Source of the DNA: Bugula neritina
Lineage: Eukaryota > Animalia > Bryozoa
NCBI GenBank assembly: GCA_964035545.1
Contig: OZ037770.1
Span: 9,182,973 to 9,246,972, forward strand
Length of the DNA: 64,000 bases
Direction: 5' to 3'
A program made the translations under genes and the position numbers. The notes below the pieces were generated by a model. The model was not told the DNA's origin. It did no database searches and worked only from the letters and a program-made list of their open reading frames with translations. This document shows, one piece after another, positions 6,015-29,241 of the stretch (the stretch's first letter is position 1; each line of letters starts with the position of its first letter).

Positions 6015-7233
6015 ATAATTATCAACAACTTATCTACATGGTGCTCTTTGTATTATTCAGCTCTGGTTATACAAAGTATTCAGTTACCAAATACCATTAG
6101 CTTAAAAACAGAAGCAATTTTTATTTTGTATTACAGTAAAGAGAAATAAAGATTACACTATTTACCTAGCAACATAACATAAAAATGCAGTGAAATAAAA
6201 GTATCAGTACTTAATGTTTATGAACATGGTGATAAAAAATTGTATATATTGTAATATAGCTTGTAATATGAAATTAGCATAGATCATTAGGTTTGAAGTT
6301 TTAAAACGAATACATTGTGTGAACTATTAGCTAACCATACAAATACACCAAATTGAAATTAACATAAAGTAAAATAAATGTAACAGTTTAGTAGATGGCA
6401 TTTGATAGTAAAGTAGCCCTCAGTGTTAATATGGCAATATTTCATCCTATAATAGAGATAGACAAATGGCTATCATTGGGATTATCATAAACTCTATATG
6501 ACCACCAATATAAAGTAGTATGAATATACAGGAACATAAGCTAAGAAATAGAGCTCAAGTTACTTCAGTTTGTACTGTCAATCATTACATGTTACAAGAT
6601 ACCAGTAAAGAGAAATTATACTGTAAAATAGGCTTCATATGTTATTCACTGAGACGTCATACATCCTCCCGCACTGTATCACAGCTTGGTGTCTAGAGGC
6701 TCAGTCTACAGTCTTCTGAAACATCTAGAAATAACAGACACAGTGATAACATTGGTATAGCATCATAACTAAGACTAACAGATATACAAGTTGAGATGTC
6801 CACCTCAGTCATTACATAACAAATATGTACACATGAGAACACAGAGTGAAGACTAACTGTATATCTACATATCAACTCATAACTAGTAGACATAGAGAGT
6901 AGCTCAAAGTGCTGGTCATACAGTTAGTTGTATACAGCTGAATCTCTTCTCTTATAAAACTAAAAAGAATATATGTCCAGGTTATGACATCATCTCCAAC
7001 ATACTTCAGTATGATTTTATCATTACATGAAAATCACAGAGATCTGCTGCAGAGTATAGAAACTACTAGTAGCAGACGTCATAGAAATACTGAGAGAAGA
7101 CAACTCTAAGGCGGGATATTATAATCACCTATGGAACTGCTGCACTGTAAGGATGTATTCAAACAGAGTCTAGTCTAATAAACAGTATAATAAATGTACC
7201 ACAAGATGGACTAATACCCTGTCACACACCTGT

Positions 7234-10200
7234 TTAGTTTAGCTGGTAAAACAGAACTTTCTTCTCACTCCATCTAGGTACAATTAGAGTGTCTTTATAC
7301 ACATGGAGATCCCACACATGACTCATAGCTCTATCAGTTGGATCTTCTACTTTGGACAGTTGTGTACCTGTAACAGGAAACGATGTATTAGTGTGTCATC
7401 ACTAGTACATAGCATAGTATATTTTATAGTGTGAGACTGTGAGAAACACTAATATATTGGGAACAGTAGTTAACTAACCAATGTAAAACTAACCTGTCTC
7501 CACATCCAGTATCCAGATGGTGGTTTTACTGCTGCGGTTAGTCACAAGAATATATTTACTTCTATAGCAGGTCACACCTTGTGGTTTAGATATATCCTTG
7601 AATGTCCAGATGACTTTCTCTGTTGTCAAGTCTAATTTAAATACTTGAGAGGAATCATAGTCAGAAACTACTACACAATGTCTGTCTGCTGCACATATTG
7701 CTGTATACCTATTACTGAGTAGAGGGCAGGGGACATGTTTAACTACCTCCCCAGTAAGAGAGTAGATTGTAAGTCTTGTACTGTGTCTATCAGGGACTAC
7801 AATCCGATCATCAACAATAGCAAGTTTGTTTACATACCCACTATTATCATGGTGAGACCAGCTGGTCACCTGTTTCCCAGTGAGATCATACACATGTATC
7901 TTCCAATTAGTGTTGCTGATACGCTGTAGAGCATACAGCTTATTCTTAAGTACTGTGACTCCAGTTACAGAGTTAGTAAGAGAAGTAAATGACTTGGAAA
8001 CACTGAAACTCTCATCTATTCTGTCTATCCCTGCACCACTATGCAGCCCTACATAAGTGTTACCCTCATATTTACAGGCAGAATAACACAGACTAGAAAC
8101 ATCAACAGACTGCAGGAGTTTGAGAGAATTAGGAAGAGTAGGAGTTGTCACTCCTTGATCTAAACTAATAAACATGTCTGCTGCAGGAACCAAGTCTATT
8201 TCTACATCTCTCTTCTCTTCTACAACATACATGTGAATATGTGTGTATAATTATATATAAGTGAGTATGTATATATAATATTTATGTCATATAAAAGTGA
8301 GTATATGTATAAATTCTATTATTAAAAACTCTGAGTAAACCTACACACAGGGCTATTTCAACAGATATTCAAAATTTCCAACCAGTAGTTTCACACATGA
8401 AGGCATTTTTCAGATAATATACGGAATATTGATGTTCTCATATAATAATATATAATTCAGATACATGATTTTTATACATTTTTATAATGTTATTAGCAAT
8501 CTAATAGTGTGCGTCTTCATTAGAACAATATTACATTATATTACTATAGTAGATAAATTACCTAACTTAATACTTCCAATAAAATCTGCAACAGTAGTGC
8601 AAGTAATCTATAGTTTAGTATACTAACCTTTGACCTGTAGAGACATGACACCACACAGCTCTATTTTAGTATACTAACCTTTGACCTTCAGAGACATGAC
8701 ATCACACAGCTCTAGTTTAGGTATCTCAACAGATATCAGTCTCTGTATTCTCTCTTTAATCTCTGCAAATCCCTCAACCAGATCCACCTACAGCATGTGA
8801 CCACATATGAACAGTTGCTAAAGATCTACTTTATATCTGTCTTCTGCTTATAATATATATTACTGGGAGTAGACTTTGCTTATTTGTATAATGAACAATT
8901 TGTATAACATGCACTATTCACTATTATAAAAAATATGAGGCAGGCTATTTTAATACACCATACACACCTGCACCATATAATAAGCATTATATAGCCATAT
9001 GTGAAGACAACTTCACTCAAAAAGAAATTTCAGCCTTGAGTTTAATTGCAAAATTTACACAAGGAAATGTCAAAATTACCAGTTGCATTATACATGAAGA
9101 ACAAATTTAAGGTGACAAACAGATACTAATATAAACTATAAATAGCCCTTTATTTAAGTTTGCTTCAAGTCTGGTTTAAAACTCTACAACTTCACATGAG
9201 ATGACGAATTAGTATATTATCATGACATCGTAACTATACAGCTATGACATCATAACTATACAGCTATGGTGTCATAGCTTGTAGATTGTTTACTGTGTAC
9301 TGTTGCTATACAGCTATAACAGAAGTCATCAACCAAAGCTGGTCTATAGAAAATGAATAAAAAAAAACAGCTTTTATCTATTATATTGTAGTTTTTACTT
9401 TCTCTTTTGAGAAGGGCTAAAGCGTTTGGCTTAGTAAACACAAAGTCATGGGTTCAAACCCCAGTAAATACCATTGGTGATGTCAGGAAGAGTATCCAAT
9501 CAAAATTGCTCATATGTCACATATGAATACGTCTTTAGCTTTAAAAAACCCCTTCGTTCTGAGTTTCTTACAGGGATAGTGAGAATAAAATCATGTTTAA
9601 GAGAGCTATAATAAAAAATAAACAATGATCAGAGATAAACTACTAAAATAGCTATTCTTCGAAACCCATGAAAATACAATAGGAATATATTTGGTAGACA
9701 GACGATGAACACTGCTCACCTGATGGTTTTGTCTAAGTTGAGCTTCTATCTTCATTCTACTGTTACTCAGTTGAGACAAAACAGTTTCAACTTCTCTCTC
9801 CATGTATCTGTTCAGTTCCTCTTTAGTCTTCTTTCTACTAGCTAAGAATTCCTTCTCCAGTTTCTCATACTTTAGTCTCACTTCAGTCAACTACATCATA
9901 CATTGTATCAGCACGTTGTAGAAAGTGAGCAACACATAAGAGAAAGTGTTTCAGAGTTGATTGTAGAAGAAAACAACATTGTAAAAAAATAGTATTTTAA
10001 TTTACACAGAATAGTAGCTAGTCACCTAACTGTTACTCTAAAGCATTAGTATTGCAATGTTTTACTAACACCTGACTACAGAATGTAGATTACAGAGTAA
10101 CACAAAGTATTTTCTATAAACACACAACCTGTTCATCACACTGTGTATGAAGAATATTCAGCAATTCCTCAGTCTCATTATCAAAGTCTGACACAGTTTT

Positions 10201-12531
10201 AGAAAGGTGTTTGAAGAAAGTAGACATCTTGTCTTCAGTGGTGAGAAGATCATCTATATTGATAAGCTCTTTGATTAAGTCATCTAGATTAACCATGTCA
10301 TGTTTAGAGTCTAAAATAGAAATGAAAATATATGCAAATTAGTACACATTTCACTAACCTGATAGCACTACAGTAATATAACCTCACAGTAGTTAGACAG
10401 TCAAGTAAGCCTAGGGCCACACTGTGGGTATTTTCGCATGCGAAAATTGAAACCACAAGTAGCAAAGGTGTCCACTGTAGCGTCAGTGATGCGTGATAAA
10501 TAAAGCTTTCATTTTTAAATCGCACTCGCTTTCAATAAAACGCAATTTACTGGAATGTAGCACTAAAATAAAGAAATTGGGCTCGCTGAATAACTACCAG
10601 CCAATTAGGTGACGACGACAGAGACGATTTGCACTTGCATTGAGAATGCTGAGCGACAAGTGCGAATGTTTTCTAAAACGCGTACAGTGGACACCTTTGC
10701 TACTTGTGATTTCAATTTTCGCATGCGAAAATACGCACAGTGTGGCCCTAAGCTAACCAGTACTACATAACCAGAAGGTAGTGAGAAGCTGAAATATCAC
10801 TACATGCTATGACTACTAGATATACAACATGTACTGTCACTTTAAAAATCTCTTTAAAATTAGAAAACACACTTAAAATCTATTGACTAGTTAATTTAAG
10901 GCAAAACCCTTTTGTAAATTAGTATTAATAAAATCAGACTAAATACCATGTTACGACAGAAAATTTCACGATAAAATCAAACGAGTAGTTATATCATGTA
11001 ACTGCAAAGGGGGTCGCGTAAGGGTTATGCAGTCAACATTTAAAACTATACTGATTACAGTAAAAACGCAATGAGTTACAGCAATGAAAAGTTTCAGACA
11101 AGCTGTACAGGTTATGGGAAGATAGTACTTAAAGTAATAATAAGACATGTAGCTTCATAGCTCTTCTACTCAAACTCTAGTGTTTATCTATTTTTATCTA
11201 ATCCTAGATTTACTAAAGAAGCCATAAAAAGTTATGAAACTCACATGAGATATAGTCGCCATCCCCCCCCACCCCTGTGTGAACACCTGATGAAAAAGGT
11301 CGTAGAATTCACATTACTTTATAGTCCCCATTATTGTGAGGCAACAAATGAAAAATGTAGGTTAATCAAGTGTGAGAGCCCTTATAAACTAGATGCTTTA
11401 AGTAGGCGAAGCTTTGTTTATGATTCCTGACATCATGACCCCTGACCTAATCTGGAATTCAAACTGATACCAGTGCTCTAACCACTATAGCTGTGCCCAC
11501 ACTGGAGAGGGTATATTATTTATTAGATATACTAAGGTTTATCAAATAGTTTTCAGTGGAACTTTCTTACCTCCAACACACAAGTTGCCTGAAGAGACAC
11601 AATTCAAACAGAACAGCTGTACACAGACTTTACATCCGTGTATGTAGGGATATGCTGTGTGTTTGGGACAAACTTTTCTTTCCAGTCTCTTGGCTTGTAT
11701 TCTGTAGTCAGTGATGGTCATCTTCTGGTGGTCATCACTGGTGTCATCATGTGACTGAATATAACAGAACATACATATAATGAGAAATATAACTCAACTA
11801 TCCATATAATGGAAAAGAAACGAAACTTACAAACACATGATCCAAACATGTACACCTATATATAGGTAAGCAACAATTTCCATCAGCACATAGTCTAGAA
11901 ATAAATGCATAATCTGCACAAAAATAAATAAAGCAGATAATTTAAGTGAAACATGATTTCTAAATGTTTTCTTACAAATCAACACTCAAATACAACAACA
12001 TGTAATCAGAGGCTTAGTTAGAGTATGCAGTGTTAAACATCAACTGAAGAAGTATTTAATGAAAGTATCACCTCATCATGTTTTCTGCAGAAGAGTTTAC
12101 GGCACACAGTACAGTATATGACTGCTGGTACTTTTTTCAACCCCTTTTTAGTGCAGACGTCACATGATACGGAGTTGTCTACTACATCAGCAGATGGAAG
12201 ATTCTCCACTCTCACATCAAACACTTCTCTGTGACAAGATACATAATTATTAAATAATAATTGAAACAATATATAATAGAATACAAAAAACTAGTACCTA
12301 CAACATAAAACATATGATGTAAATCATTAACTTTTTACAAACAGTATGTCTCAGCTCTGCTTATACAAAACTAACTTACCTACACCAGGGACACCTGATC
12401 ATGTCATTCACATCAACATTACGAGTAAGACACAGTAAACAGTGTACATGACCACATGGTAGATACTTGGGATTCTCTAAACCTTCTTTTAGTAAACAGA
12501 ATCCACACTCAACTTCTTCTGCTGCAGCCAT
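7234..12531 (-). CDS. TRIM-NHL-like E3 ligase (RING, 2 B-box, coiled coil, beta-propeller), array copy 2, apparently complete
   Basis: ATG at 12531, RING exon to 12380, B-box exons near 12.07-12.23 kb and 11.57-11.76 kb, coiled-coil exons near 10.13-10.31, 9.72-9.89 and 8.68-8.79 kb, propeller exon 8219-7494, last exon 7367-7234 (GTQLSKVEDPTDRAMSHVWDLHVYKDTLIVPRWSEKKVLFYQLN*). Confidence 0.9.
9410..9590 (+). mobile_element. tRNA-derived SINE, same family
   Basis: AGCGTTTGGCTTAGTAAACACAAAGTCATGGGTTCAAACCC...GGTGATGTCAGGAAGAGTATCCAATC; absent from the paralogous intron of copy 4. Confidence 0.78.
10414..10748. mobile_element. MITE, PIF/Harbinger-like
   Basis: About 65-bp near-perfect TIRs GGGCCACACTGTG...CACAGTGTGGCCC flanked by CTA/TAA; no ORF; in a TRIM copy 2 intron. 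Confidence 0.85.
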
Positions 12532-13304
12532 TTCACTCAACTCTATATTATAAAACAGGAGAATATATTATAAAGTGTATTCAGATCCCATGCAGTTCAC
12601 TGTATTGAGAAAATTTAGTAGTTTATGTTTGTGTCTCTTCTGACTCAAAACAATAGACTCGTTGAAATATGATTTGCACCTCAAAAAAAGTTCTTGTATA
12701 GCACTGTATTGTAAGATGTGCAAATCCCATTATTTAAAACAAACATTTATTGATGCAACTAGGTACTTCATACTAGTAGATAATTATCAAATACTGCTAA
12801 GACTAGTGACATTAGTTGGTGCTCACACTTAAAAGACTCGTATTTAAGCTCATAAACATATGGCAAATGGTTGTTCATAGCCATGCAACAAAAGAATTAC
12901 CATTGCGATTGTAGTTGTGATCCATCAAGTTCAACAAGAACAACAACAAACAATTCAATACAAACAATAAGCATCATGTACATAGAATTAAATATATTCC
13001 TAATTATTAAATATTACCATTGGCATTACGTCATCACATCTGAATCTACTGTATTACTTAAGATTGTGGAAAGCAATCAAAATACAGGCAATAACTTCAA
13101 CTAATTTTATCCAGCTTCAAGATTATGTAAAATTTTAGTTCTGAAATAAAGATCGTTAACGACCATACTTTTAGTTCTTGTATGATTATATTATAAATAT
13201 GTAAATATAATTATTTTCAATTTGTGAAACTGAATCAGAATCAGAATGACACCCTCACAGTTATCAGTTATGGCATTGGTAGAGATATAGAAAGTTAAAC
13301 TAAC

Positions 13305-13650
13305 TTAAGTTTTGTTCGAGTTTCCAGTTTACCACAAGGAAACCACGTTACACGAATAATCTTCAACTTGGATCCTGTTCTTCAGAGAGGAACTGTGAGC
13401 CCAAGGACAGCTACAGTTTCATTTTGCACCTTGCAGTCAAACTCAAAGTAGGACTTTGCCCAGATTAGGGAAACGCCTCTTTCGGAAATGACGTCACGTT
13501 CGAACGCTGACATCGTCAGGGTTACCCCCTCTTGTTTTTATAAAAATTTTACTAAAGTTAGAAGTGATACTTGCTCGGGTGACGATTCTAGCTGCACATC
13601 ACAATGACATGTCGCTATGGTTATAGTGTGACGTTTCCAAAAACTGGGCA
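13305..13650 (-). promoter_or_regulatory. Non-coding first exon and promoter of TRIM copy 2
   Basis: Donor AA|GTTAGT near 13304; CGGAAATGACGTCAC (13483-13497); IRF-like AGTTTCATTTT (13415-13425); GGGTTACCCC shared with copy 4. Confidence 0.62.
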
Positions 13651-15508
13651 ACATTGCGAAGTCTGTCTTTCATAATAATTATGTCACAGTCAGCTAGAGG
13701 CTGTCACATACCTGTATCCACGATTCAAAAACAAGTTCTTTAAAGTCAAATTACATTTCAATTATAGTAATCAGCTGATAGTTTAAAATAGATATATTGT
13801 TATAATTTTACAGGTAACAGATGTAGGTAACTTATACAGGTAGCTTGAGCTTATGCAAGTAACTTATGATGCATATTGGTAGCAAGCTACTAGTTCTGTT
13901 TACTAAAATAAATTAAAGTGCAGTCCCAGCTGTGTATTATTTCTTAGTGAATATCACAGTTTTATTTCTTGCTATAATAAAACCACTTATTTCTGAAATC
14001 AGCCTTTGGTTTTGGATCATCTCATTTATATCCTTTAACCTGGCTGAACATGTTCAAAAGTGTTGCATCACACAGCTCTTAGTCATCTGATGTTAAAGCA
14101 ATTATTTGTATAACAATTTTTCTAACAGCAAAAAGTAAAAACAGTGCTAAGCTTGCTTCTCCAATAACCCAACATAAGCAAGAATACACACGTTTCACCA
14201 ATATTATAAACTGGGCAAACCAACATTGTAATAATAGCTTTCTTTTCATTTATTATAAACAGTGCACTGAGCATGAATGAAACTGTATTGCAAATTTGCT
14301 GACAGCGAGAAGTCAAGGTAAGCCAACTTCTCTAATAACTCAAGTAAGAATCTACAACTGTGCATCTATAACAAGCTGCTACATTGCTAATGTTATACTC
14401 TATACATAATAGAAATTCTGTAACCTACTTTACTGCAATAAGACATGGTGATGTGTTCATATAGTGAAATATTTAGCCAGTATAGTAACTGCAATCACAT
14501 TAATTTATTCAGTGTTTAGACTTTAGAGGATATATTGGAATAATAATTACATTTAATAATATTCTGTGAGAGCCAATCAAATGATGAGATGATCACACAA
14601 TATCAAACAGGTTATAGACTGCATTATATAAACTATTAGTCTGCCATACAAATATAGGAGATTTAAATTAGCATAAACTATAGAGTAAAATGAATGTAGC
14701 AGCTACTTTACTGAGTAAGACATGGTGATAGTGAAATATAGTGAAATATTTTAACATTAGCAGCTGTAGTCACTTTAATTTATTCAGTGTTTATGGGATA
14801 TATTGGAATAATTAATTACATTAAATATTATTCAGACACAGCCAATCAAATGATAAGATAATCACACAATATCAAACAGGTTATAGACTACATTATATAA
14901 AATATTAGTCTGTCATACAAATGCAGTGAATGGAGACTAGCATAAACTACAGAGTAAAATGAATATAACAGATTAGTGAATGGCACCTGATAGTAAACAA
15001 TAAACAGTGTAATTTAATAATATTTTAGTCTGCAGTAGTATAATTACCATTATAAACACAGTGATAGATCTATGACTTTCAATACAAATAAGGTTAGATA
15101 TATAAAAATTGCAGTCTAGCTAATACATTGAAGTTATTCAGGCTGTGTAAAAGAGGATTGGTAAAATATTACTTGAAGTTAGTTATGTTTAGGTGTATAT
15201 GTTAGTTACTGAGACATCATATGTTCTCCCGCTGTATAAGTTTGTTACTGAGGCGTCATATGTTCTCCCACACTGTATCATAGCTGCGTGTTGAAGAACT
15301 CAGTCTACAGAGTCAACTTTGAGAATCATCTAGAAATAACAGACACAGTGTATATGTAGAAGTTGTACATCTCAGACATATCATTAGAAATATGTACATT
15401 AGTAGAAAACACAGAGTTGAGCACCAGATGTATTCTAACAGAGTCTAGTGTGATAAACAATATAATAAATGTACCACAAGATGGAATAATATCCTGTCAC
15501 AAACCTGT

Positions 15509-18500
15509 TTAGTTTAGCTGGTAAAACAGAACTTTCTTCTCATTCCATCTAGGTACAATCAGAGTGTCTTTATACACATGAAGATCCCACACATAACTCT
15601 TAGCTCTATCAGTTGGGTCTTCTACTGTAGACAGTTGTGTACCTGTAACAGGAAATGATGTATTAGTGTGTCATCACTAGTACATAGCATAGTATATTTT
15701 ATAGTGAGAGACTATGAGGAATACTAATATATTGGTAACAGTAGTTAACTAACCAATGTAAAACTAACCTGTCTCCACATCCAGTATCCAGATGGTGGTT
15801 TTACTGCTACGGTTAGTCACAAGAATATATTTACTTCTATAGCAGGTCACACCTCCTGGTTGAGATACATCCTTGCATGTCCAGATAACTTTCTCTGTTG
15901 TCAAGTCTAATTTAAATACTTGAGAGGAACCAGAGTCAGAAACTACTACACAATGTCTGTCTGCTGCACATATTGCTGTATGACTATTACTGAGCGTACC
16001 GCAGGGGACATGTTTAATTACCTCCCCAGTGAGAGAGTAGATTGTAAGTCTTTTACTGTGTCTATCAGGAACTACCACTTGGTCATCAACAATAGCAAGA
16101 TTGTTTGCACGCCAACAATTATCAAGATGAGACCAGCTGGTCACCTGTTTCCCAGTAAGATCATACACATGTACCTCCCAATTAGTGTTGATGGTACCTT
16201 CTAGGGTATACAACTTATTCTTATGTACTGTGACTCCAGTTACATAGTTGGTAATAGAAGCAAATGACTTGGAAACACTGAAACTCTCATCTATTCTGTC
16301 TATCCCTGCACCACTATTTAGCCCTACATAAGTGTTACCTTCATATTTACAGGCAGAATAGCAGCTGTTAGAAACATTAACAGACTGCAAGAGTTTGAGA
16401 GATTCAGGAGGATCTAAACTAATAATCATGTCTGCTGCAGGAACCAAGTCTATTTCTACATCTCTCTTCTCTTCTACAACATACATGAGAATATGTGTGT
16501 ATGTGTGTATACTTATATATAAGTGAGTATGTATATATAATATGTATGTCATATAAAAGTGAGTATGTGTATATATTCTATTATTAGAAACTCTGAGTAA
16601 ACCCACACGAAGGACTATTTCCACAGATATTCAAATTTTCCAACCAGTAGTTTCACACACATGAAGGGCACTTTTCAGATAAGATACTGAATATTACATT
16701 ATGCAATGCAGATATTACAGGTTTTAAATAAGCTCAGTAATACAAGTACAAGTATTTTACAGTTTAGTATACTAACCTTTGACCTTAAGAGACATGACAT
16801 CACATAGCTCTAGTTTAGGTATCTCAACAGATATCAGTCTCTTTATTCTGTCTTGAATCTCTGCAAATCCTTCAACCAGATCCACCTACAGTATATAAGA
16901 ATGGGATTAGTCAGTGAGGCTAAAAACAGTCTTTTTAGTTACAACTCACTACTTTATTGTGTGTTAGTTGAAATAAAGGTACAAATGGAAAAGAATTGCA
17001 GGAAATTAACTATTTAAATAAACTATAATTAGTATTTTATTTAAGATCACAGAGATTTTGGTGAAAGTTCTGAACTCTACAACTTTGAAATAATTTTTTT
17101 ACTTACCGTAGTGGAAGACATTGAAGTTGGTAAGCACACTACTACACAGCTAAAGGGGAAATGAGTAATCAAGCATTGCGATGGTCCATTTACGTCTTAC
17201 ATGGTTTTTCAATTTTCACTGCGTTTCATGTATATACAGCATGTTAGTGCATTCCTGAAGACTAAAAAAACCTATTCATAAATATATTTAGTAAACAAAT
17301 GGTGAAAACTGCCCACCTGATGGTTTTGTCTAAGTTGAGCTTCTATCTTCATTCTACTGTTACTCAGTTGAGATAAAACAGTTTCAACTTCTCTCTCCAT
17401 ATATCTGTTCAGTTCCTCGTTAGTCTTCTTTCTACTAGCTAAGAATTCCTTCTCCAGTTTCTCATACTTTAGTCTCACTTCAGTCAACTACATCATACAT
17501 TGTATCAGCACATTGTAGAAAGTAGACAACACATCAGAAAAAAAATCTTCATGCGAAATTGAGTTTAAAAAATCACGTGTTTTAACAGTGTATAGTATTT
17601 TAATTTACTCAAAATAGTAGCTAGTCACCTAACTGTTACTCTTAAGTATCAGTATTACAATGTTTTACTAACACCTGACTACAGAAAGTAGATTACAGAG
17701 TAACACAAAGTATTTTCTATAAACACACAACCTGTTCATCACGCTGTGTATGAAGAATATTCAGCAATTCCTCAGTCTCATTATCAAAGTCTGACACAGT
17801 TTTAGAAAGGTGTTTGAAGAAAGCAGACACCTTGTCTTCAGTGGTGAGAAGATCATCTATATTGATAAGCTCTTTGATTAAGTCATCTAGATTAACCACG
17901 TGGTGTGGTGAGTCTAAAATAGAAATGAAACACCACATTCAACGTGACTATTGCAAAACCATGACAAAAGTTGAAAAGAGCAAACTTCAAACAGACTGTA
18001 CAAGTGAATAGCATTTGAATATAAAAACAATTCACTCTCATTTGATAAAACACTTTTAACTACAAAAAGCACAAATTTCACATTCAGTTGTTTCGAGTTG
18101 TAAATGTTTCACTATTGACCCTTTTCCAACATTCCTGATACTCAATTGATAATTTACAGTTGTTTCTTCCTAATAGGATCAATGTATAAAACACAGAGCT
18201 AGCTATAAATTTCCAATGTTGCTATTCACGAGTAGCCCTCACAGTGTAATAGGTAGCAGATTGACTTAAGTTGGAGGACGGCAGTTTGATTCCAGGTGCA
18301 GCATTCTTACAATATTTTCTGAGAGGGCTCTACAGTTTATTAGATTTATCAACATTTAGCAAGTAGCTTTCAGCAGTACATTCTTACCTCCAACACACAA
18401 GTTAGTGCAAGATGTGCACTGCACACAGAACAGCTGAACACACACTTTACACCCTTGTATGTAGGGATATGCTGTGTGTTTGGGACAAACTTTTCTTTCC

Positions 18501-19333
18501 AGTCTCTTGGCTTGTATTCTGTAGTCAGTGATGGTCATCTTCTGGTGGTTATCACTGGTGTCATCATGTGACTAAATATAACATAATACATCTTTACTGA
18601 GAAATATAACTCCGCTGTGCATATAGTGGCAAAGAAACCAAAATTAAAAATATATGATCTAAACATGTAAATATATTTATAGCAAAGTAACAATTTCAAC
18701 CAGCACATAGTCTAAAAATAAATGTATAATCTGCATAAAAGCAGATAAAACAGATAAATGTGAAACATGATTTCTTAATGTTTTCTGACAAATCAACATT
18801 CAAGTACAACAATATGTAATCAGAGGCTGAGTTAGAGTATGCAGTGTTGAATATCAACTGAAGAAGTATTTCATGAAAGTATCACCTCATCATGTTTTCT
18901 GCAGAAGAGTTTACGGCACACAGTGCAGTATATGACTGCTGGTACTTTTTTCAGTCCTTTTTTAGTGCACACGTCACATTATACGGAGTTGTCTGCTACA
19001 TCAGCAGATGGAAGATTCTCTACTCTCACATCAAACACTTCCCTGTGACAAGACACAGAATTATTTATCAGTAATAAAAATCATATATAACATAATCAGG
19101 TAAAAAATATCCTTTAAAATGAAAATCATTGACTTATTACCAGCAGTATGTCTCAGCTCTGTCTATACAAAACTAACTTACCTACACCAGGGACACCTGA
19201 TCATGTCATTCACATCAACATTACGAGTAAGACACAGTAAACAGTGTACATGACCACATGGTAGACACTTGGGATTCTCTAAATCTTCTTTTAGTAAACA
19301 GTATCCACACTCAACTTCTTCTGATGCAGCCAT
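15509..19333 (-). CDS. TRIM-NHL-like E3 ligase, array copy 3, apparently complete
   Basis: Same 8 coding exons as copy 2; ATG at 19333 (MAASEEVECGYC...), propeller exon inside ORF 15764-16624, stop TAA ends at 15509. Confidence 0.9.
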
Positions 19334-19879
19334 TTCACTCAACTCTATATTATAAAACAGGAGAACATATTATAAAGTGTATTCAGATCCCATGTAGTTA
19401 ACTGTAATGAAAGAATTTAGTAGTTTATCTTTGTGTCTCTTCTCACTCACTACTTAATATCTTTTAACATTGTGGAATGTGACTCAACTATAAAACCGCA
19501 GTGTAGATGTAATGTATTTCAAGCACTCTGTACAACTTGAAATGATATTTTTAGCACCTGCAGATATTAGTCCAGACCTATTATATAACAAATCAATTAT
19601 TAATAAGAAGAGTTTTCCTATTAAATATTCTAAGAGTTAATATTTATAGCCAATTAATACTTTGAAGGTTCTGGAATTAGGTATTTCTAACAATTCACCC
19701 AATATCCCACAAGTTGATGCATATTGTTGACATGTAATATAATGCAGAGAAAGTATAATTGTTGTATTGTAAATAGATATAAACATATGTGGTTTCTACC
19801 ACTTCTGTTACTACATCTACAGTCTACAGTAGAGGCTCTGTATATTAAATAAGTTCTGTTGAGCAGTCCCAAACAGCAG

Positions 19880-20290
19880 ACTATGTTTCTGCTGTTTGGG
19901 ACCCCTATACTACAAAAGAAATAAATTCCATCAAAGAGGTACACACACGGGCAGTAAGAGCCATAGCTAACATCAAGGGTAGAAGAGGAGTGTGAGAAGC
20001 AAAAGAAAGACTGGAGCTGGCCGCCCTCGATGAAAGAAGAAGAACTCAACGGCTAAGACTCCTTATGAGGATACTCCAAAAGGAAGAATATCACCCAGCA
20101 CTCTCTGCAGCGTATGACGAACTAATAAATACCCCGGAAAGTTTTATCCAAACTAGGACCCAAACACTAGGACAGCCAAGATCAGTCAGCACCAATAATA
20201 ACTGCTATTATAACAGCTTCTTGCCACGGACAATCCGTGACCTTAAAGGGAACAATCCTTGCAAGACTAATTTACACACAGAATAATCTA
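19880..20290 (+). mobile_element. Decayed 3' fragment of a non-LTR retrotransposon (CR1/L2/RTE-like)
   Basis: Translates VWDPYTTKEINSIKEVHTRAVR...*...LAALDERRR...YYNSFLPRTIRDL, the typical post-RT C-terminus of LINEs, with an in-frame stop. Confidence 0.75.
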
Positions 20291-20699
20291 AACATTGACA
20301 GGTTAACCTACCTGTACTAATAAACAATATTGCAACACACACTGCAATCAATTTATGGACTATTGTATGCATTTTACTTTCTGACCAACCGTAAACATAT
20401 GAGGCATGCCGCTTCTGCTACCTAGTGGTCTAGCATGATCGTAATCTGGAGGTAACTGGAGGTATCATTTGATAATTTAAACTTGCTGTCACAGCCAGAC
20501 TAATTGTGGTACTGTGAGTGTCAGTGTGACTGTCACTCACTATGAGTCAAGTGAGTGAGACTGAGTGAAACAGCATCAGTATGACTGATAGTATGAGTAT
20601 CACCATGACTATCAGTATATCACTATAAGTATATTACTATCACATTCACTGGTAGTAACCTAAACTATCACTATGAGTATGCGTAAGCCGTAACGTAAA

Positions 20700-21190
20700 T
20701 CACTAAATGTCGATGAAAATAGAGATGATACAACCACAATAAGTTGATTTTAAAACTGAAATTTGAAAACAATGAAGATCGTTTTCAAGTTTGTTAACAC
20801 TTACAGTTATTGCTGTCGGTAAACAATTAAATTTGTTGAGGCAAACTTCCCCCTCGCCCTGGAAGTCCTTAGTAACTAGTAATACTAGCAAGTAGCAATA
20901 GTTCCTTTTGGTGTTAGATCTTTCTGCGCAGGTGCAAGATTAGAATAACACTTACCCTGGACTGGGGGAATTCCCTAACAACGCGTGCAGTTAATTCAAA
21001 TAATATAACCCATTGAACTGGAAAAGACCAGTTCAAACTTGATCAGCCTCGCAGCGGCACTTCAGAGTTATCTTTCCAAACAAACCCTATGCGCAATTAA
21101 TATTAGATACATCATACAGAGCTCCAGGTCTGTATCTCACGAGCCCTTGCTCACGAATCTCTATAGGTCACGAGAACAGCCTGGACCGTG
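20700..21190 (-). promoter_or_regulatory. Probable divergent first exon and promoter of TRIM copy 3
   Basis: CpG-richer patch, strong donor GG|GTAAGT at 20956/20955, canonical kB motif GGGGAATTCCC (20965-20975), and GGTCACGAG near 21166 resembling the distal motif of the other promoters. Confidence 0.45.
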
Positions 21191-24100
21191 TTTTGTTGTA
21201 TGTGTGTACAAAGACCAAATGACCAAGTTTAATGAAGCCATGAGTTTAACCTGGCATTCTAAGATAATATTATGAATTGATGCTTTAGTGTTTAGTGAGA
21301 TACAGAGTGAGGACTGTATGTCATAATGTGCTGGAAGCTTCATGCCCTCACCTTATAAATCTCATGTTTATGCTTTACAGTAGATATCCATGTGACAGTC
21401 CTTGAAATTAGGAGCTCTTATCAAGTTGGCAAGTTACAGGTTTGAGTGCACCTTCTGTTTGTACTATTAATGGAGCAGCTATAATGACATTACTAACCAA
21501 TACAGAAAACAACTGTTTCTTGTATAGTGAATCTTTATTATAGCATATTCACAAGTGTACGTGAAGTAGGTTTTGAACTGTAAAGAATTCTAGTTTACAG
21601 AATTCTTTACTGTAAACTAGAATTACAGTAAAGAATTATTCTACATTCATAGAGAATAACATTAAATAGAATTTGGACGTATATTGAAAAATGTGTGGAA
21701 TTTATATAGTATTTCAATATATTATATGCATGTAAACTAGAAGCCTGTGTTCTAGTTAGTGCAGACAGTATTTTGTGATCTGGTCTTTAACTTTGCATTT
21801 TAAAGGTCAACAAACTACGTTGCATTAGTTGCCATACCCTTTATTTGCATAAGTGTACTCAATTTGTTATAACTTGAAACACAAATATTTTTGTTGTGAA
21901 AATGAAGTATTTCAATCATTTATTTGACTTTTTAGGTTCAAACATGTATAATTAAACAATTGTCATGATTTATTGAGCTATGATATCTGCTGTAATAAAT
22001 AATAATAGTAGTTATTTGAAATGTATGTAAAAATATAAACATACATAAACTATTTACTGTATAATAATATAACTGATCATTAAGCTTCACTGTATCCTGT
22101 TATTATTTGTATTCAAAATAAAGTTCAACTCTTGGAGATACAAATGAAACAGAGAACAGATGTCAATATAGCGGAAAGTGCATCAGCACTAAAATGTGCT
22201 GTCAGAAAGACCATGAGTTCATAATACAGGGTGTTGTCTCCCCTACAGAGGATGTCTGAGTTATTTATATCCTGCATCATTATAAAGTCCTGTTGGTTGT
22301 ATTTAGTGATATACTAGTCTGACTTCTTCTGAGAATGTAATAAACCAACCAGTTTACAAACTCGAATGCTGAACCAACAAACTTATGAACATAACCTCAG
22401 CAAGAATCTCCAAACATTTCTTTATAACAGGCTGCTACATTGCTTATATTATATTCTATACAGAATATCAATTGCATAACTTTTGTTGTTGGGATAAGAC
22501 ATGGTCATGTGTTTTTAGTACAACATTTTACCATTAGCAGCTGTAATCACTTTAATTTATTCATTGTTTATAGAATTGATTAGAATAACTATTCACTTTG
22601 ACTATTATTCTAACACAGCCAATCAGATGACTATGATGGTTATGTTCCCACACAAGGATCTCAAACTGTTACTCAAACCAACATAGTCACAAATTATTAT
22701 TAGACTAGACCTCAGGTGTGAGAATCTTACTCATTACTATAAGAAGAAGTCAGAGTATTAACTCAAAGAAGTTACTAATATATCAGAGACTGTCCAATAC
22801 CTTGTGCTACTGGCACTGCCGTTACTTTTATACAGGCTTCATTTACCATCACATTATTTGACTACATTCCTATAACCTACATTGTTGCTAATGGAAACCA
22901 GGTTTAAACAAATGAAATACTATAATAACCTATAGCTACCATTTGGCTTACAAAATGCTTCCTAGTTTGCACACAGAGAGATTGTTAGTGAAATTTAACA
23001 CATTATTTTGTATAGCCTCATTGTTTGAAGGTTTAGAAAAACATGTGGAGCCTGAAGTTGGGTACCTCTAGCATGGATCATAACTATGTATGTAGTAAAC
23101 TGAGCCCCATGGCTCAGACTGATGAACGATGGCTAGATGCAGCACAAAGTTCAGTCACTGAGGGCATTGTTCGGCACATGCTCCAAATTTTTAATTCCAA
23201 ACTTGAACTCATCACTCAAACCAGAATTATTATAAATTGGCATATTTGGTGATATACTAGTAGGTTAGTGTATTTTTGATGTTTACTATTGTCCAAACTT
23301 GAGAGACCCTGAACCAATGCACTCAGTGACCCCAAAGTTTGTGCTGCATTAATACACTCCCTAATTGAGATGCAATAGCTTGCAATTTTTAAAAAACTTT
23401 CTGTGAAATTATCAGTCACACAGTAAACTATAATACGACTTTGCATTGTTAGATTAAGAAAACCTAATTGAAATCATCTTTAGCCCAAAAATGCAAGCAA
23501 TTAATGTTGTATAATATTTAAAGAATACATTCCAATATACTATCTACCTAGCAAAATGGAGTCAAAACACATAACTATATTACAGCTCAGTGCATAAACT
23601 GTCAGTAAATATGACCTGGTAAGTCTACATTGGTGACCTTCTAATTGATCTGTTATATTATTGATTGATTATTAGTTATCAGAACAATAATTAATCATTA
23701 ATTTTAAAGTTTATAAATGACTATATTATGTAAAATATTAGCTTGTCACAAAAAGCGGTAGATGGAAATTAGCATAAACAGTATAGTAAAATGAATGCAA
23801 CAGTAGTGGTCGATATTAAAGAGTAAATAGTGAACATTGTGATGTACAAGAATATCAGTGTGTAGTAAATGTAGACTTGCAATTACCAATAGAATCACAT
23901 TGATCTCTATATGACCTTTAATGTAAATCAGGTTAGATATAGAAAAAGTTGTAGGCTAGCTAATACTTTATAATCAAGCATGTTATGTGACATAGGTTGG
24001 GTTAAGTGAAAATAAGTCGTGTAGGCTGTGTGGAATAGGCTTGGTACAAGTGAAAATAAGTTATTACTTGAAATTAGTTATATTTAGGTGTGTATGTTAG

Positions 24101-24415
24101 TTACTGGCATGTAATACAGCCTCGGGCACTATGAGTAGCTGAATAAGTGATTTAATGGAATGTCATGCAGCCTGCCACACTGTATCATAGCTGCGTGTTG
24201 AAGAACTCAGTCTACCAAGTCAATTTTGAGAATCATCTAGAAATAACAGACACAGTGTATATGTAGAAGTTGTACATCTCAGACATATCATTACAAATAT
24301 GTACATTAGTAAAAAACACAGAGTTGAGCACCAGATGTATTCAAACAGAGTCTAGTGTGATAAACAATATAATAAATATACTACAAGATGGAATAATATC
24401 CTGTCACACACCTGT

Positions 24416-27400
24416 TTAATTTAGCTGGTAAAACAGAACTTTCTTCTCATCCCATCTAGGTACAATCAGAGTGTCTTTATACACTTGAAGATCAAACACA
24501 TAACTGCCAGCTCTATCAGTTGGATCTTCTACTTTGGACAGTTGTGTACCTGTAACAGGAAAAGATGTATTAGTGTGTCATCCCTAGTACTTAGCATAGT
24601 ATATTTTATAGTGTCAGACTCAGAGAAATACTAATATATTGGTAACAGTAGTTAACTAACCAATGTAAAACTAACCTGTCTCCACATCCAGTATCCAGAT
24701 GGTGGTTTTACTGCTGTAGTTAGTCACAAGAATATATTTACTTCTATAGCAGGTCACACCTTGTGGTTTAGATACATCCTTGCATGTCCAGATGACTTTC
24801 TCTGTTGTCAAGTCTAATTTAAATACTTGAGAGGAACCACAGTCAGAAACTACTACACAATGTCTGTCTGCTGCACATATTGCTGTATTACTATAACTGA
24901 GTAGAGGGCAGGAGACATGTTTAATTACCTCCCCAGTAAGAGAGTAGATTGCAAGTCTTCTACTGTGTCTATCAGGAACTACCACCTGATCATCAACAAT
25001 AGCAAGTTTGTTTACATACTCACTATTATCATGATGGGACCAGCTGGTCACCTGTTTCCCAGTAAGATCAAACACATTTACCACCCAATTAGTGATGCTG
25101 ATAAGCACTAGAGCATACAGCTTATTCCTATGTACTGTGACTCCAGCTACTGAGTTGAGATTAGAAGTTAAATACCAAGTAAGAGAAGCAAATGACTTGG
25201 AAACACTGAAACTCTCATCTATTCTGTCTATCTCTGCACCATGACTCAGCCCTACATAAGTGTTACCGTCATAGTTACAGACAGACAAACAGTAACCAGA
25301 AACGTCAGCAGACTGTAAAAGTTTGAAAGATTTAGGAAGAGTAGAAGTTTTTACTCCTTTATCTAAATTAACAGATATGCCAACTGAAGGAACCAAGTCT
25401 ACTTCTACATCTCTCCTCTCGTCTACAACATATGTGAATATGTCTGTATATATATATATATGGGAAAGATGCATGCATGTATAAAGTTTCATTAACTGAA
25501 GCTTATGCAGGGCTAATTCAACAGATATTCAATAGTTTCAACACATGAAGTTCAATATTAAGATACTATTGATTGACGTTCATATATTACATTATATAAT
25601 GCAGATACATGATTATTACAAGTAAAAAATACTATCAGTAATATAAAAGTGTGTCTGCACTAGCACAATATTACAAGTCATCTATGGTAAACTTTGACTT
25701 TTAGAGACATTACACAGCTCTAGTTTGGTATACTAACCTTTGACCTTTAGAGACATGACATCACACAGCTCTAGTTTAGGTATCTCAACAGATATCAGTC
25801 TCTGTATTTTATTTTTAATCTCTGCATATCTTTCAACCAGATCCACCTACAGTGTATTATAATAATCATGTAGGAATATGTGTGAAGACAACTCCAGTTA
25901 ATAAGAAACTTCATGTATGTGTTCAATTACATAAAGTTAGCGTAGGCCGTAGGGACACACGGCTCGATTTACACGCGCGTGATGTGGCGAGAAAACCCGT
26001 TTAGCCCAAGAATAGGACGTTGTGTGCGGATTTCCATGCGTCTAACATGCTGAGCGAGAAGTGTGGCAAGCTTGTGTGTGTTTGATCTAATTGGCTTATT
26101 ATCATTTAGCGAGCATATTTTTTTATTTTAATTCACGTATTAGCTTTTAGCGAACTGAATTAAAATTTAAAACAGTTTCATATAGTTTGTATTCCCGCTT
26201 TTATAATATTTAAAGTCACTTTGCCGAAGGCATAATTTATAAACAAATGTCTGTAGGCGAGCAGTAAAATTCAACACTAACATCATTAGCTAATAAATTT
26301 CTGCACTCGCAACACACGCATTGTGTGTGGCATGTCTGAACGGGTTTTCTCGCACGTCACGAGTGAGTAAATCGTGTCGTCCTACGCTTGCACAATGGAA
26401 ATGACAAAATTACCAATTACATTATATATGCTATATATAGAACACCAATGCAGTGACAAACAGATATATAATATATAGCATTTTATTTCAACGAGCAGAT
26501 ATTTTGTAAGATCAAAGTAATTGTGGTGCAAAAGTGACACTCAAAAATTTCAATCTTTCTTTAAGCCTGGTTTTTAAACTCTACAACTTTACATGAGATG
26601 ACAAATTAGTATATTATCATGACATCATAACTGTACAGCTATGATGCCATAGCTTGCAAATTGTATACAGAGTGTTATTACTATACAGCTGTAACAGAAG
26701 TAATATCAAACAACGCTGATGAATGAAAAAAAATATATAAATTAAATTAGTTATGTTTTAAAGAGTATATAAGTAATAAGTAAACTTATTTATTATGGCA
26801 GGCCTAAACAATTGACCTTGATCTCTGTTTACCCCTAAAAATATTCAAAACATGTTTGGTACATGACCACTGCACACCTGATGGTTTTGTCTAAGTTGAG
26901 CTTCTATCTTCATTCTACTGTAACTCAGTTGAGACAAAACAGTTCCAACTTCTCTCTCCATGTATCTGTTCAGTTCCTCTTTAGTCTTCTTTCTACTAGC
27001 TAAGAATTCCTTCTCCAGTTTCTCATACTTTAGTCTCACTTCAGTCAACTACATCATACATTGTATCAGCATATTGTAGAAAGTGGACAATACATAAGAG
27101 AAAGTGTTTCAGAGTTGATTGTAAAAGAAAACAACATTGTAAAAAAATAGTATTTTAATTCACACGGAATAGTAGCTAGTCACCTAACTGTTACTCTTAA
27201 GTATTAGTATTGCAATGTTTTACTAACAACTGAATACAGAATGTAGATTACAGAGTAACACAAAGTATTTTCTATAAACACACAACCTGTTCATCACGCT
27301 GTGTATGAAGAATATTCAGCAATTCCTCTGTCTCATTATCAAAGTCTGACACAGTTTTAGAAAGGTGTTTGAAGAAAGCAGACATCTTGTCTTCAGTGGT

Positions 27401-29241
27401 GAGAAGATCATCTATATTGATAAGCTCGTTGATTAATTCATCTAGTTTAACCATGTGGTGTGGTGAGTCTAAAACAAAAATGAAAGAAAATGCCTTCAAA
27501 AGCCTGCAAAACAAAAACGTAGTGAGAAGCTGAAAAATCACTCTATGCTGTGATATGCTATTGCTAGAGCATAAACAACATGCAGTTCCCTGTACTTCTT
27601 CCTGTTGAATAAAGCATTCATAAATTGTCTTTGAGCAGCCATTAATAAAAACTAAACCTAACATGGATTACTGCAGTTTCACTAAGTTTCAGCAATAATA
27701 ACTGCAAAATTGAAATAAAATATGGGAAGGTATTTTCTCACACACTTTACAGATAAGGGGAGCTCTAGATCACAAATAGTTCCTTCCAATTAGCATTAAA
27801 CATGATTTATAAAAAAAAGAAATGCAATTTCTATACCACAATCCTTTGTGCTGATATAACATATTATGGGGTTGACATTTGTTTCAATAGGCAACACAAC
27901 GACATTTGCTAAGCTACATAACTATCCTTCCGTTGTACATCATAAATAAGTTATTTCTACAAAAATGTATAACCTTAAAACTTCTTATTCAATTCATGAA
28001 CAACATTACAAGAAAAACCATCAAGAAAACAGAGATGCTTGAAAAAATAAAAAGACGCACGGTTTCTATTCAAAGTAAGCTAACTTCTGATTTACTGAGC
28101 ATGTTCATGAATATTACAAAAGTTTAGCAATTAACTTTCAGCAGAACTTCTTTACCTCCGACACACAAGTTGCTTGAAGAGACACAATTCAAACAGAACA
28201 GCTGAACACAGACTTTACATCCCAGTGAGTAGGGATATGCTGTGTGTTTGGGACAAACTCTTTTCTCCAGTCTCTTGGCTTGTATTCTGTAGTCAGTGAT
28301 GGTCATCTTCTGGTGGTCATCACTAGTTTCCTCATGTAACTGAATTTACCAGAAAGAATATTAATTGAGAAATGTAACTCAACAATGTATAGCGAAAAAG
28401 AAACCAAACTTAAAAAAAATACATAATCTAAACCTGTACAAACTTGATTTTCCTTAACTCTGTGCACACTGGAAATCTCCAGTTTTTAGCTATTTTTCAC
28501 AATTTAGCTGCTAATGAACATGGGTTTTTGCCCAAAATTAGTGAAACATCAAGAAATACACCTAAATAATCAAGGTTCTTCTTAAGTTTGCATGATTTTC
28601 CATGTTTTTTCCTACTTATTCAGCTTATTTAAATTGCAGAGTGTTATGAAAAAACCATAACCCTCCAAAATCAAAAGTAGCTGAATGATCTCTCAATATT
28701 TTCTTACAAATCAACATTCAAATACAACAACATGTAATCAGAGGCTGAGTTAGAGTATGCAGTGTTGAACATCAACTGAAGAAGTATTTAATGAAAGTAT
28801 CACCTCATCATGTTTTCTGCAGAAGAGTTTACGGCACACAGTACAGTATATGACTGCTGGTACTTTTTTCAGTCCCTTTTTAGTGCACACGTCACATGAT
28901 ACGGAGTGGTCTGCTACATCAGCAGATGGAAGATTCTCCACTCTCGCATCAAACACTTCCCTGTGACAAAACACATGTTTGTATAGCAATAAACAGAATG
29001 CAATAAATTAGTATAAGGTCAAAAATATAATCTAAATTCTCTCCTTACCAGCAGTATGTCTCAGCTCTGCTTATACAAAACTAACTTACCTATACCAGGG
29101 ACACCTGATCATGTCATTCACATCAACATTACGAGTAAGACACAGTAAACAGTGTACATGACCACATGGTAGACACTTGGGATTCTCTAAACCTTCTTTT
29201 AGTAAACAGAATCCACACTCAACTTCTTCTGCTGCAGCCAT
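24416..29241 (-). CDS. TRIM-NHL-like E3 ligase, array copy 4, apparently complete
   Basis: Same exon structure; ATG at 29241, propeller exon inside ORF 24671-25492, stop TAA ends at 24416. Confidence 0.9.
25939..26388. mobile_element. MITE with imperfect ~60-bp TIRs
   Basis: AGCGTAGG...CGAGAAAACCCGTT / AACGGGTTTTCTCG...CCTACGCT; absent from the paralogous intron of copy 2 (empty site near 9055). Confidence 0.8.

Follow-up and report, generated by a model that had tools for sequence, protein, structure and literature searches.

This report concerns a family of tandemly arrayed TRIM-type genes in the bryozoan Bugula neritina, in which the C-terminal propeller appears to be diversified by selection while the ubiquitin ligase (E3) half of the protein is conserved. 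The stretch analysed, hereafter the window, comprises 64,000 nucleotides (G000:C6:9182973-9246972) of a 216 Mb assembly, with a GC content of about 33%. Self-comparison of the window revealed four minus-strand paralogs of one gene unit, in which a RING, putative B-box1, B-box2 and coiled-coil regions and an NHL-like propeller follow one another in this order. By open reading frames (ORFs) and Pfam, the unit was seen to contain a C3HC4 RING exon, two B-box-like exons and two helical exons, together with a 240-codon exon and a 44-codon last exon for which Pfam returned weak beta-propeller matches only. The sole fully intact gene of the window is copy 2 (7234..12531, minus strand), which has 8 exons and encodes 604 amino acids.

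The exons of copy 2, all on the minus strand, are exon 1 (12380-12531; RING), exon 2 (12072-12228; putative B-box1), exon 3 (11571-11754; putative B-box2), exons 4 (10129-10310), 5 (9720-9890) and 5b (8679-8787), which make up the putative coiled coil and linker, exon 6 (7494-8219; propeller blades 1-5) and exon 7 (7234-7367; strand 5D and blade 6), the last of which ends in the stop codon TAA at 7234-7236. Exons 1 to 5 were placed by ORFs as well as RNA joints, with the Pfam RING match as further evidence for exon 1, and exon 5b by RNA joints. The RNA evidence consisted of contigs of four RNA-type runs (X1, X3, X4 and X14), from four studies, placed on positions 7200-12600 of the window. All seven introns of copy 2 were supported by joints in these contigs, with CT..AC at the intron ends, i.e., GT..AG on the minus strand, and RNA depth fell almost to zero over the unique stretches of the long introns (8829-9371 and 10820-11543). 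In the resulting model, every intron is bounded by GT-AG and the frame stays open for 604 codons, a length that matches the 563-626 amino acids of the named homologs described below. A seven-exon model built from the ORF list (566 amino acids) was rejected, since the RNA joints add exon 5b and move the exon 6 acceptor 5 nt upstream to 8219. Exon 5b itself (109 nt, 36 amino acids), which encodes a linker or the end of the coiled coil, is bounded by joints from 8219 to 8679 and from 8784/8787 to 9717/9720, and is 92-98% conserved across all paralogs. A lack of transcription would have counted against the preliminary description; spliced transcripts of the family do exist. It is to be noted that the joined, spliced model served for the length and stop counts, while the queries for searches and folding were single exons or database proteins.

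All eight zinc ligands of a C3HC4 RING are present in copy 2 (C9, C12, C26, H28, C31, C34, C47 and C50), and Pfam zf-C3HC4 (PF00097) was matched with 21.3 bits at a cutoff of 21, other RING models giving E values of 2e-5 to 4e-4. The B-box matches remained under their cutoffs, namely ANCHR-like_BBOX in exon 2 (E = 5.5e-4) and zf-B_box in exon 3 (E = 0.0025; 18.4 bits, cutoff 24.1 bits); direct reading of the sequence showed that the Cys/His spacing of exons 2 and 3 fits B-box1 and B-box2, respectively. Exons 4, 5 and 5b together encode a putative coiled coil of about 153 residues, in which heptad-like charged and leucine residues are abundant; in the model of a Watersipora homolog, the last 17 residues ahead of the propeller are helical. 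For the propeller exon of the window, Pfam gave no NHL match, but only sub-threshold matches to PQQ_2 and other propellers, and PF01436 (NHL) was matched by 21 of 150 family members, so that the link to NHL is weak at the sequence level. Folding of exon 6 by AlphaFold2 with 149 homologs yielded a model of high mean confidence (predicted local distance difference test, pLDDT, 92.9), in which 19 strands are arranged as four-stranded blades. When this model was compared with the PDB by Foldseek, the NHL domains of Drosophila Thin (6xg7), TRIM3 (7qrw), TRIM2 and TRIM71 were found at or near the top, with probability 1.0, template modelling (TM) scores of 0.54-0.64 and about 16% identity. A second fold was obtained for the complete propeller of a Watersipora protein (P0042:290-604; pLDDT 88.9), another one (P0068) having been set aside because it ends at the exon 6 equivalent. 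This model has 24 strands in six blades, with an N-terminal strand closing blade 6, and the part corresponding to the last exon comprises, in order, strand 5D, a D-A loop of nine residues, strands 6A and 6B, the B-C loop and strand 6C. Neither a filamin match nor a SPRY match was found, and the C-terminal domain is a predicted beta-propeller; moreover, only about 65 residues (exon 5b and the first 29 residues of exon 6) separate exon 5 from blade 1, which leaves no room for a filamin domain. Overall, these models support the view that the gene is of the TRIM type and that its propeller is NHL-like and six-bladed, in agreement with the preliminary description, which had likened the propeller to NHL propellers.

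When the genome was searched with the propeller exon, 150 matches were scored from 286 first-look candidates, and the family thus has at least 150 propeller exons; 140 of these matches (93%) are without a stop inside the match. They are arranged in tandem and distributed over at least nine contigs. The contig of the window (C6) has about 37 close copies, with 70-86% identity, in three arrays, designated A (9.10-9.21 Mb), B (10.30-10.51 Mb) and C (11.44-11.60 Mb). Among 1.84 billion representative proteins, there were 423 matches at E values up to 0.001, most of them exon-sized metagenome gene calls. The named homologs were all from the cheilostome bryozoan Watersipora subatra, where they are annotated as 'uncharacterized', 'TRIM2-like' or 'TIF1-beta-like'; going by these named matches, the family has so far been found only in bryozoans.

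Divergence between the copies is unevenly distributed along the gene. Within the window, nucleotide identity to copy 2 was 97-99% in exon 1, 95-96% in exon 2, 91-95% in exon 3, 96-98% in exon 4 and 97-99% in exon 5, but only 88-89% in exon 6 and 91-94% in exon 7. The last intron (126 nt) is 93-95% identical among the window copies, and comparison of this value with the 88-89% of the adjoining exon 6 indicates that the propeller-coding sequence accumulates differences at about twice the rate of its own intron. Likewise, the proportion of nonsynonymous differences (pN) in exon 6, 0.09-0.10 over all sites, exceeds the divergence of intron 6 (0.055). The Nei-Gojobori ratio of nonsynonymous to synonymous divergence (omega), pooled over pairs, was 0.14-0.5 in exons 1-5, 0.75-0.93 in exon 6 and 0.5-0.87 in exon 7. 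Since synonymous divergence (dS) within array A is similar across exons (0.12 in each of exons 6, 2, 5 and 7), the E3 half must be constrained, and is not merely younger or more homogenised. The statistics of the E3 exons were drawn from 21 genes of arrays A and B, leaving out the E3 exons of array C and the distant arrays (C3, C4, C5 and C8). The E3 module had been called near-invariant, which is too strong for exon 3, where pN is 0.065-0.09, and passes over functionally relevant lesions.

Site models were then fitted with self-written GY94/F3x4 pruning code on IQ-TREE topologies, using one branch-length scale factor. For exon 6 of 35 genes, the one-ratio model M0 gave an omega of 0.92, whereas M2a, which admits positive selection, was strongly preferred to M1a (likelihood-ratio test statistic, LRT, 377), with omega classes of 0.25 (63% of codons), 1 (18%) and 5.0 (18%). 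A posterior above 0.9 for omega > 1 was reached under M2a by 24 codons, among them L42, Y44, H58, S82, R98, G126, Y127, H144, Y170, Y186, K210, Q212 and R227 (exon 6 numbering). In the control, i.e., exons 1-5 of 21 genes, M0 omega was 0.35, and the class with omega > 1 (omega 6.7; LRT 33) took up 1.3% of the codons, consisting of a two-residue spot in B-box2 and the first codon of exon 3. The B-box2 spot, I38-H39 of exon 3 (11638-11643), is the chief location of this class in the E3 half and reads IH, IQ, SL, IL, VH or SQ among the paralogs. The exon 6 signal was recovered from the same 21 genes as the control (LRT 235), from three segments of the exon with separate trees (LRT 111, 72 and 99) and after removal of four lesioned genes (LRT 342). 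Exon 7 gave an M2a LRT of 83 and five selected codons (M14, H16, W18, W32 and S33). A test of the fixed effects likelihood (FEL) type, with a site-specific synonymous rate, found 14 positive sites at p < 0.05, 9 of them at p < 0.01, and 23 negative ones; this test is low-powered, and its synonymous rate (alpha) was estimated as 0 at most of the 14 positive sites. As a cross-validation, columns were picked for their variability in arrays B and C only: within array A, the ratio of nonsynonymous to synonymous diversity (piN/piS) in these columns was 1.27, or 2.4 when taken against framework piS, and 0.52 in the remaining columns. Finally, codon pairs that differ in their amino acid had 2-3 nucleotide differences in 53% of cases at selected sites vs 25% elsewhere, and the whole-codon changes noticed earlier are thus real. 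The ten patch triplets that were quoted earlier for copies 2, 3 and 4 are likewise all present in the translations, and the ratio at the variable sites, for which a value of 1 or less would have spoken against the idea, is above 1. Taken together, these results support purifying selection on the E3 half and an omega well above 1 at a subset of the propeller codons.

Because the strands of a four-stranded blade form an up-down meander, consecutive loops come to lie on opposite faces of the propeller, irrespective of how the strands are named. When the 24 selected sites of exon 6 were placed on the predicted strands, 12 fell in D-A or B-C loops, nine in the adjoining strand halves and three on the other side, so that selected residues make up 21 of 118 positions in the 'top half' and three of 93 in the 'bottom half' (Fisher p = 8e-4). 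The count is 20 or 21 depending on L34, which was scored as D-A loop, but lies mid-way on the N-terminal closing strand 6D in the complete homolog. Sites with at least five residue types were distributed similarly (28 vs 6 between the halves; p = 6e-4). Almost no variation is seen in the A-B loops or in the C-D loops (LTGKQ, LTGEV, LTTEK, VETGT). When the strands of exon 7 are ordered as in the complete homolog, all five of its selected sites are in the D-A loop, at the start of 6A or in the B-C loop of blade 6. In 124 homologs of less than 50% identity, the same face was the more variable one (entropy 2.70 vs 2.21; p = 4e-5), and the selected sites were the most variable (3.43 vs 2.36; p = 1.6e-8), which indicates that the pattern is a long-term property of the family. 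Most patches occur in 21-32 distinct variants among the 35 genes, and each close paralog would thus present an almost unique surface on one face. These data, read on the model, support the location of the selected sites on one propeller face, and the alternating D-A and B-C loops account for the roughly two variable patches per blade on one face that had been proposed from the sequence. By analogy with known NHL propellers, the variable face may be the ligand-binding top face.

The history of the exons is not uniform either. The tree is star-like, and the pairwise homoplasy index (PHI) was weakly significant (p = 0.033). Between arrays A and B, dS was 0.85 in exon 4, 0.92 in exon 7 and 0.44 in exon 2, compared with 0.12 in exon 5, 0.18 in exon 6 and 0.12 in exon 1; exon 5 (9720-9890 in the window) is 97-100% identical in nucleotide sequence between the two arrays, and the neighbouring exons 4 and 7 only 78-80%. 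The low values of exons 5 and 6 therefore reflect exchange or homogenisation between arrays that are 1.1 Mb apart. Judged from these sequences, the gene is shown to be a mosaic of homogenised and deeply diverged exons.

The other copies in the window are in poorer condition than copy 2. Copy 1 (483..3240, minus strand) is represented by exons 1 to 5b only, its propeller exons lying to the left of the window; the first Cys of its B-box2 is replaced by Tyr (2385-2387), and its off-window propeller exon has a TAG stop. Copy 3 (15509..19333, minus strand; 8 exons, 597 codons; exon 6 at 15769-16473, exon 7 at 15509-15642) has a premature TAA at 18979-18981, codon 72, in exon 2 ahead of B-box1, and is probably a pseudogene. 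Copy 4 (24416..29241, minus strand; 8 exons, 611 amino acids; exon 6 at 24676-25422, exon 7 at 24416-24549) has an open frame, but the last zinc-ligand Cys of its RING (C50) is changed to Tyr (TGT to TAT at 29092-29094). Even copy 2 has an oddity, namely a Tyr at a family-conserved, non-ligand Cys in RING position 23 (12463-12465), so that a Cys to Tyr change (TGT to TAT) in a zinc-finger exon has occurred separately in each of the three neighbouring copies 1, 2 and 4. One further array member has a frameshift in exon 5. With several copies bearing stops or lost zinc ligands, the arrays are shown to evolve by birth and death. The span of 7234-25492 first assigned to the array starts at the copy 2 stop codon and ends at an ORF artefact upstream of the copy 4 propeller. 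Beyond the end of the array, at about 29.3 kb, a myosin follows as the next gene: an ORF at 42390-42920 (minus strand) matches Pfam Myosin_head with E = 3e-19, and belongs to the gene for which a myosin VI intron had been noted earlier at 34395-35358.

Two features of the introns were also observed. Directly after exon 5b, there are head-to-tail arrays of a 51-nt unit, in one to seven units depending on the paralog, each consisting of the last 45 nt of exon 5b and the donor GTTAGT; the unit recreates the 5' splice site AAAG|GTTAGT together with an in-frame TAG. In copy 2, this duplicate of the exon 5b 3' end is at 8628..8678 (minus strand), and such arrays are also found in copy 4 (25706-25737) and in other paralogs (G000:C6:10342474-10342728 and 10438658-10438963). 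The units look like intronic decoy donors, and the RNA joints use the first donor. Intron 3 of copy 2 contains, at about 10406-10757, an element of about 350 bp with terminal inverted repeats of about 80 bp, for which 870 first-look genomic candidates were found at 95-98% identity; given this copy number and identity, it is a young, high-copy miniature inverted-repeat transposable element (MITE). The same insertion is present in two other genes of array A. The MITE also explains the very high RNA-contig depth in intron 3, and Rfam gave no match in this highly covered stretch.

We consider it probable, at roughly two chances in three, that the constant E3 scaffold and the selected, variable propeller face make up a germline repertoire of recognition modules, for which an immune role is inferred. 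In such a repertoire, the variable face would be the ligand-binding surface, as in other NHL propellers, and the variable recognition modules would be carried on a constant, dimerising E3 scaffold. The E3 would ubiquitinate or sequester fast-changing targets, the likeliest of which would be viral, parasite or transposon proteins or RNAs, and the diversity would arise from point mutation and paralog exchange and be kept by diversifying selection. A fuller version, put forward here tentatively and not as something that we would assert, is that the germline of bryozoans would encode more than 150 TRIM-NHL proteins acting as intracellular sensors, with faces selected for diversity and short-tract exchange between arrays, which may constitute an NHL counterpart of TRIM5/finTRIM of independent, lophotrochozoan origin, restricting viruses, parasites or mobile elements.

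Several points weigh against the repertoire reading, and they are set out here along with the alternatives on which they bear. First of all, the immune role is reached by inference, and the same genes under the same selection could have a non-immune function, such as the diversification of RNA or protein targets during development or in germ cells, the control of transposons, or a part in conflicts within the genome, over reproduction or between colonies of a colonial animal. Brat and LIN-41 are RNA-binding TRIM-NHL proteins; among solved folds, NHL domains from developmental or neuronal TRIMs come nearest, and the named matches are confined to colonial bryozoans, all of which would suit such a function. 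Nonetheless, conserved regulators of the TRIM-NHL type evolve slowly and are present in single copy (group 1, PMC2533329), the opposite of what is seen in the bryozoan family. Furthermore, the proteins are without a signal peptide or membrane segment and the RING begins right after the initial Met, which argues against allorecognition at the cell surface. Overall, a non-immune function appears unlikely, but deserves to be kept in mind.

A second set of points concerns the selection signal itself. The codon models were our own code, with fixed topology and proportionally scaled branches, and not PAML or HyPhy. The faces were assigned by strand topology, from the DSSP strands of the model, and not by coordinates, and three selected sites, E50, S73 and K90, are on the other face. 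The RNA contigs, which show that the family is transcribed and spliced as modelled, are not assignable to one paralog. Half of the informative site pairs are incompatible, and the trees used in the site models are thus poor descriptions of the history. In addition, synonymous diversity is raised about two-fold within two codons of selected sites: piS is 0.21 at one codon, 0.15 at two and 0.09 beyond five, and synonymous heterozygosity in columns with a conserved residue drops with distance (rho = -0.22, p = 0.008). Some of the selection signal could therefore stem from the way in which mutation or conversion has acted locally, and omega at the selected sites drops from about 4.5 against the framework to about 2 when the synonymous rate is taken locally. 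Such a synonymous rise is to be expected where the framework is homogenised by exchange between paralogs and the patches are shielded by selection, but local mutation hot spots would also produce it. Taken to its end, this argument would make the patches hot spots of multi-nucleotide mutation or short-tract conversion that inflate tree-based dN/dS, in line with the 53% of differing codon pairs with 2-3 changes, the incompatible sites with their PHI value and the mosaic exon history between arrays. We regard this as improbable, since piN at the selected sites (0.41) remains higher than piS, by a factor of about two locally and of 4.5 relative to the framework, the signal holds with separate segment trees, variability also peaks at the same positions in homologs of less than 50% identity, and blind mutation is not expected to keep to alternate loops of one face while sparing the loops of the other. 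The synonymous gradient, reticulation and mosaicism thus leave the signal standing, although the exact omega values are not to be taken literally.

Lastly, all copies of the window except copy 2 are damaged, either by a stop or by the loss of a zinc ligand, and the local array is therefore partly decaying. That the whole pattern is one of relaxed constraint, with the loops of decaying young duplicates drifting toward an omega of 1 in a pseudogenising array, would fit the M0 omega of about 0.9 in exon 6, the stops in copies 1 and 3, the lost zinc ligands in copies 1 and 4 and the exon 5 frameshift in another member, but is very improbable in view of the rejection of M1a (LRT 377, and 342 without the lesioned genes), a framework class with omega of about 0.25, propeller nonsynonymous divergence above that of the intron, 140 of 150 propeller-exon matches without a stop, and the existence of spliced transcripts.

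The family can be set against three kinds of known systems. Like the bryozoan genes, TRIM5alpha, TRIM22 and finTRIM/btr exhibit lineage-specific tandem expansion, birth-and-death turnover with pseudogenes, and positive selection in surface loops of the C-terminal recognition domain; this domain, however, is B30.2/PRY-SPRY in these proteins and an NHL-like six-bladed propeller in the bryozoan family. Antiviral function has been demonstrated for TRIM5, whereas in the bryozoan family it would be a putative one. With the conserved TRIM-NHL subfamily (class VII), represented by TRIM32/Thin, TRIM2, TRIM3, TRIM71/LIN-41 and Brat, the family shares a RING and a six-bladed NHL propeller, and its putative B-boxes and coiled coil would be further common features. 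Proteins of the TRIM2, TRIM3 and TRIM71 type have a filamin domain between coiled coil and NHL, which TRIM32/Thin does not, and the bryozoan architecture is thus closest to TRIM32/Thin, but with an added putative B-box1. The conserved TRIM-NHL proteins are slowly evolving and near single-copy, in contrast to a family with at least 150 members, sites of omega > 1 and about 16% identity to solved NHL domains. Thirdly, the leucine-rich repeats (LRRs) of plant and animal nucleotide-binding, leucine-rich-repeat receptors (NLRs), and the sea-urchin and amphioxus expansions, are germline-diversified repertoires on repeat scaffolds. These repertoires resemble the bryozoan family in their tandem paralogs, hypervariable exposed positions on a rigid repeat scaffold and paralog exchange, but they have another fold and a NACHT/NB-ARC switch, where the bryozoan family has an E3 ligase effector.

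To our knowledge, no immune receptors have been described in bryozoans, and the immunity of the phylum is essentially undescribed; our full-text literature searches retrieved no paper on bryozoan TRIMs and none that describes positive selection on an NHL face. In vertebrates, the fast-evolving, immunity-linked TRIMs are all based on B30.2/SPRY; these group 2 TRIMs have been described as absent from invertebrates, and TRIM-NHL genes as belonging to the conserved, near single-copy and slowly evolving group 1 (PMC2533329). The bryozoan family, by comparison, exhibits the already known dynamics of the TRIM5/finTRIM kind on an NHL domain, so that evolution in the 'arms-race' mode is seen in an invertebrate with a propeller of the NHL type. 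The analysis defines about 29 positions on a rigid, well-predicted scaffold as candidates for ligand-binding tests, and the family offers a natural system for studying how, within tandem arrays, a scaffold can be homogenised while a binding face is diversified.

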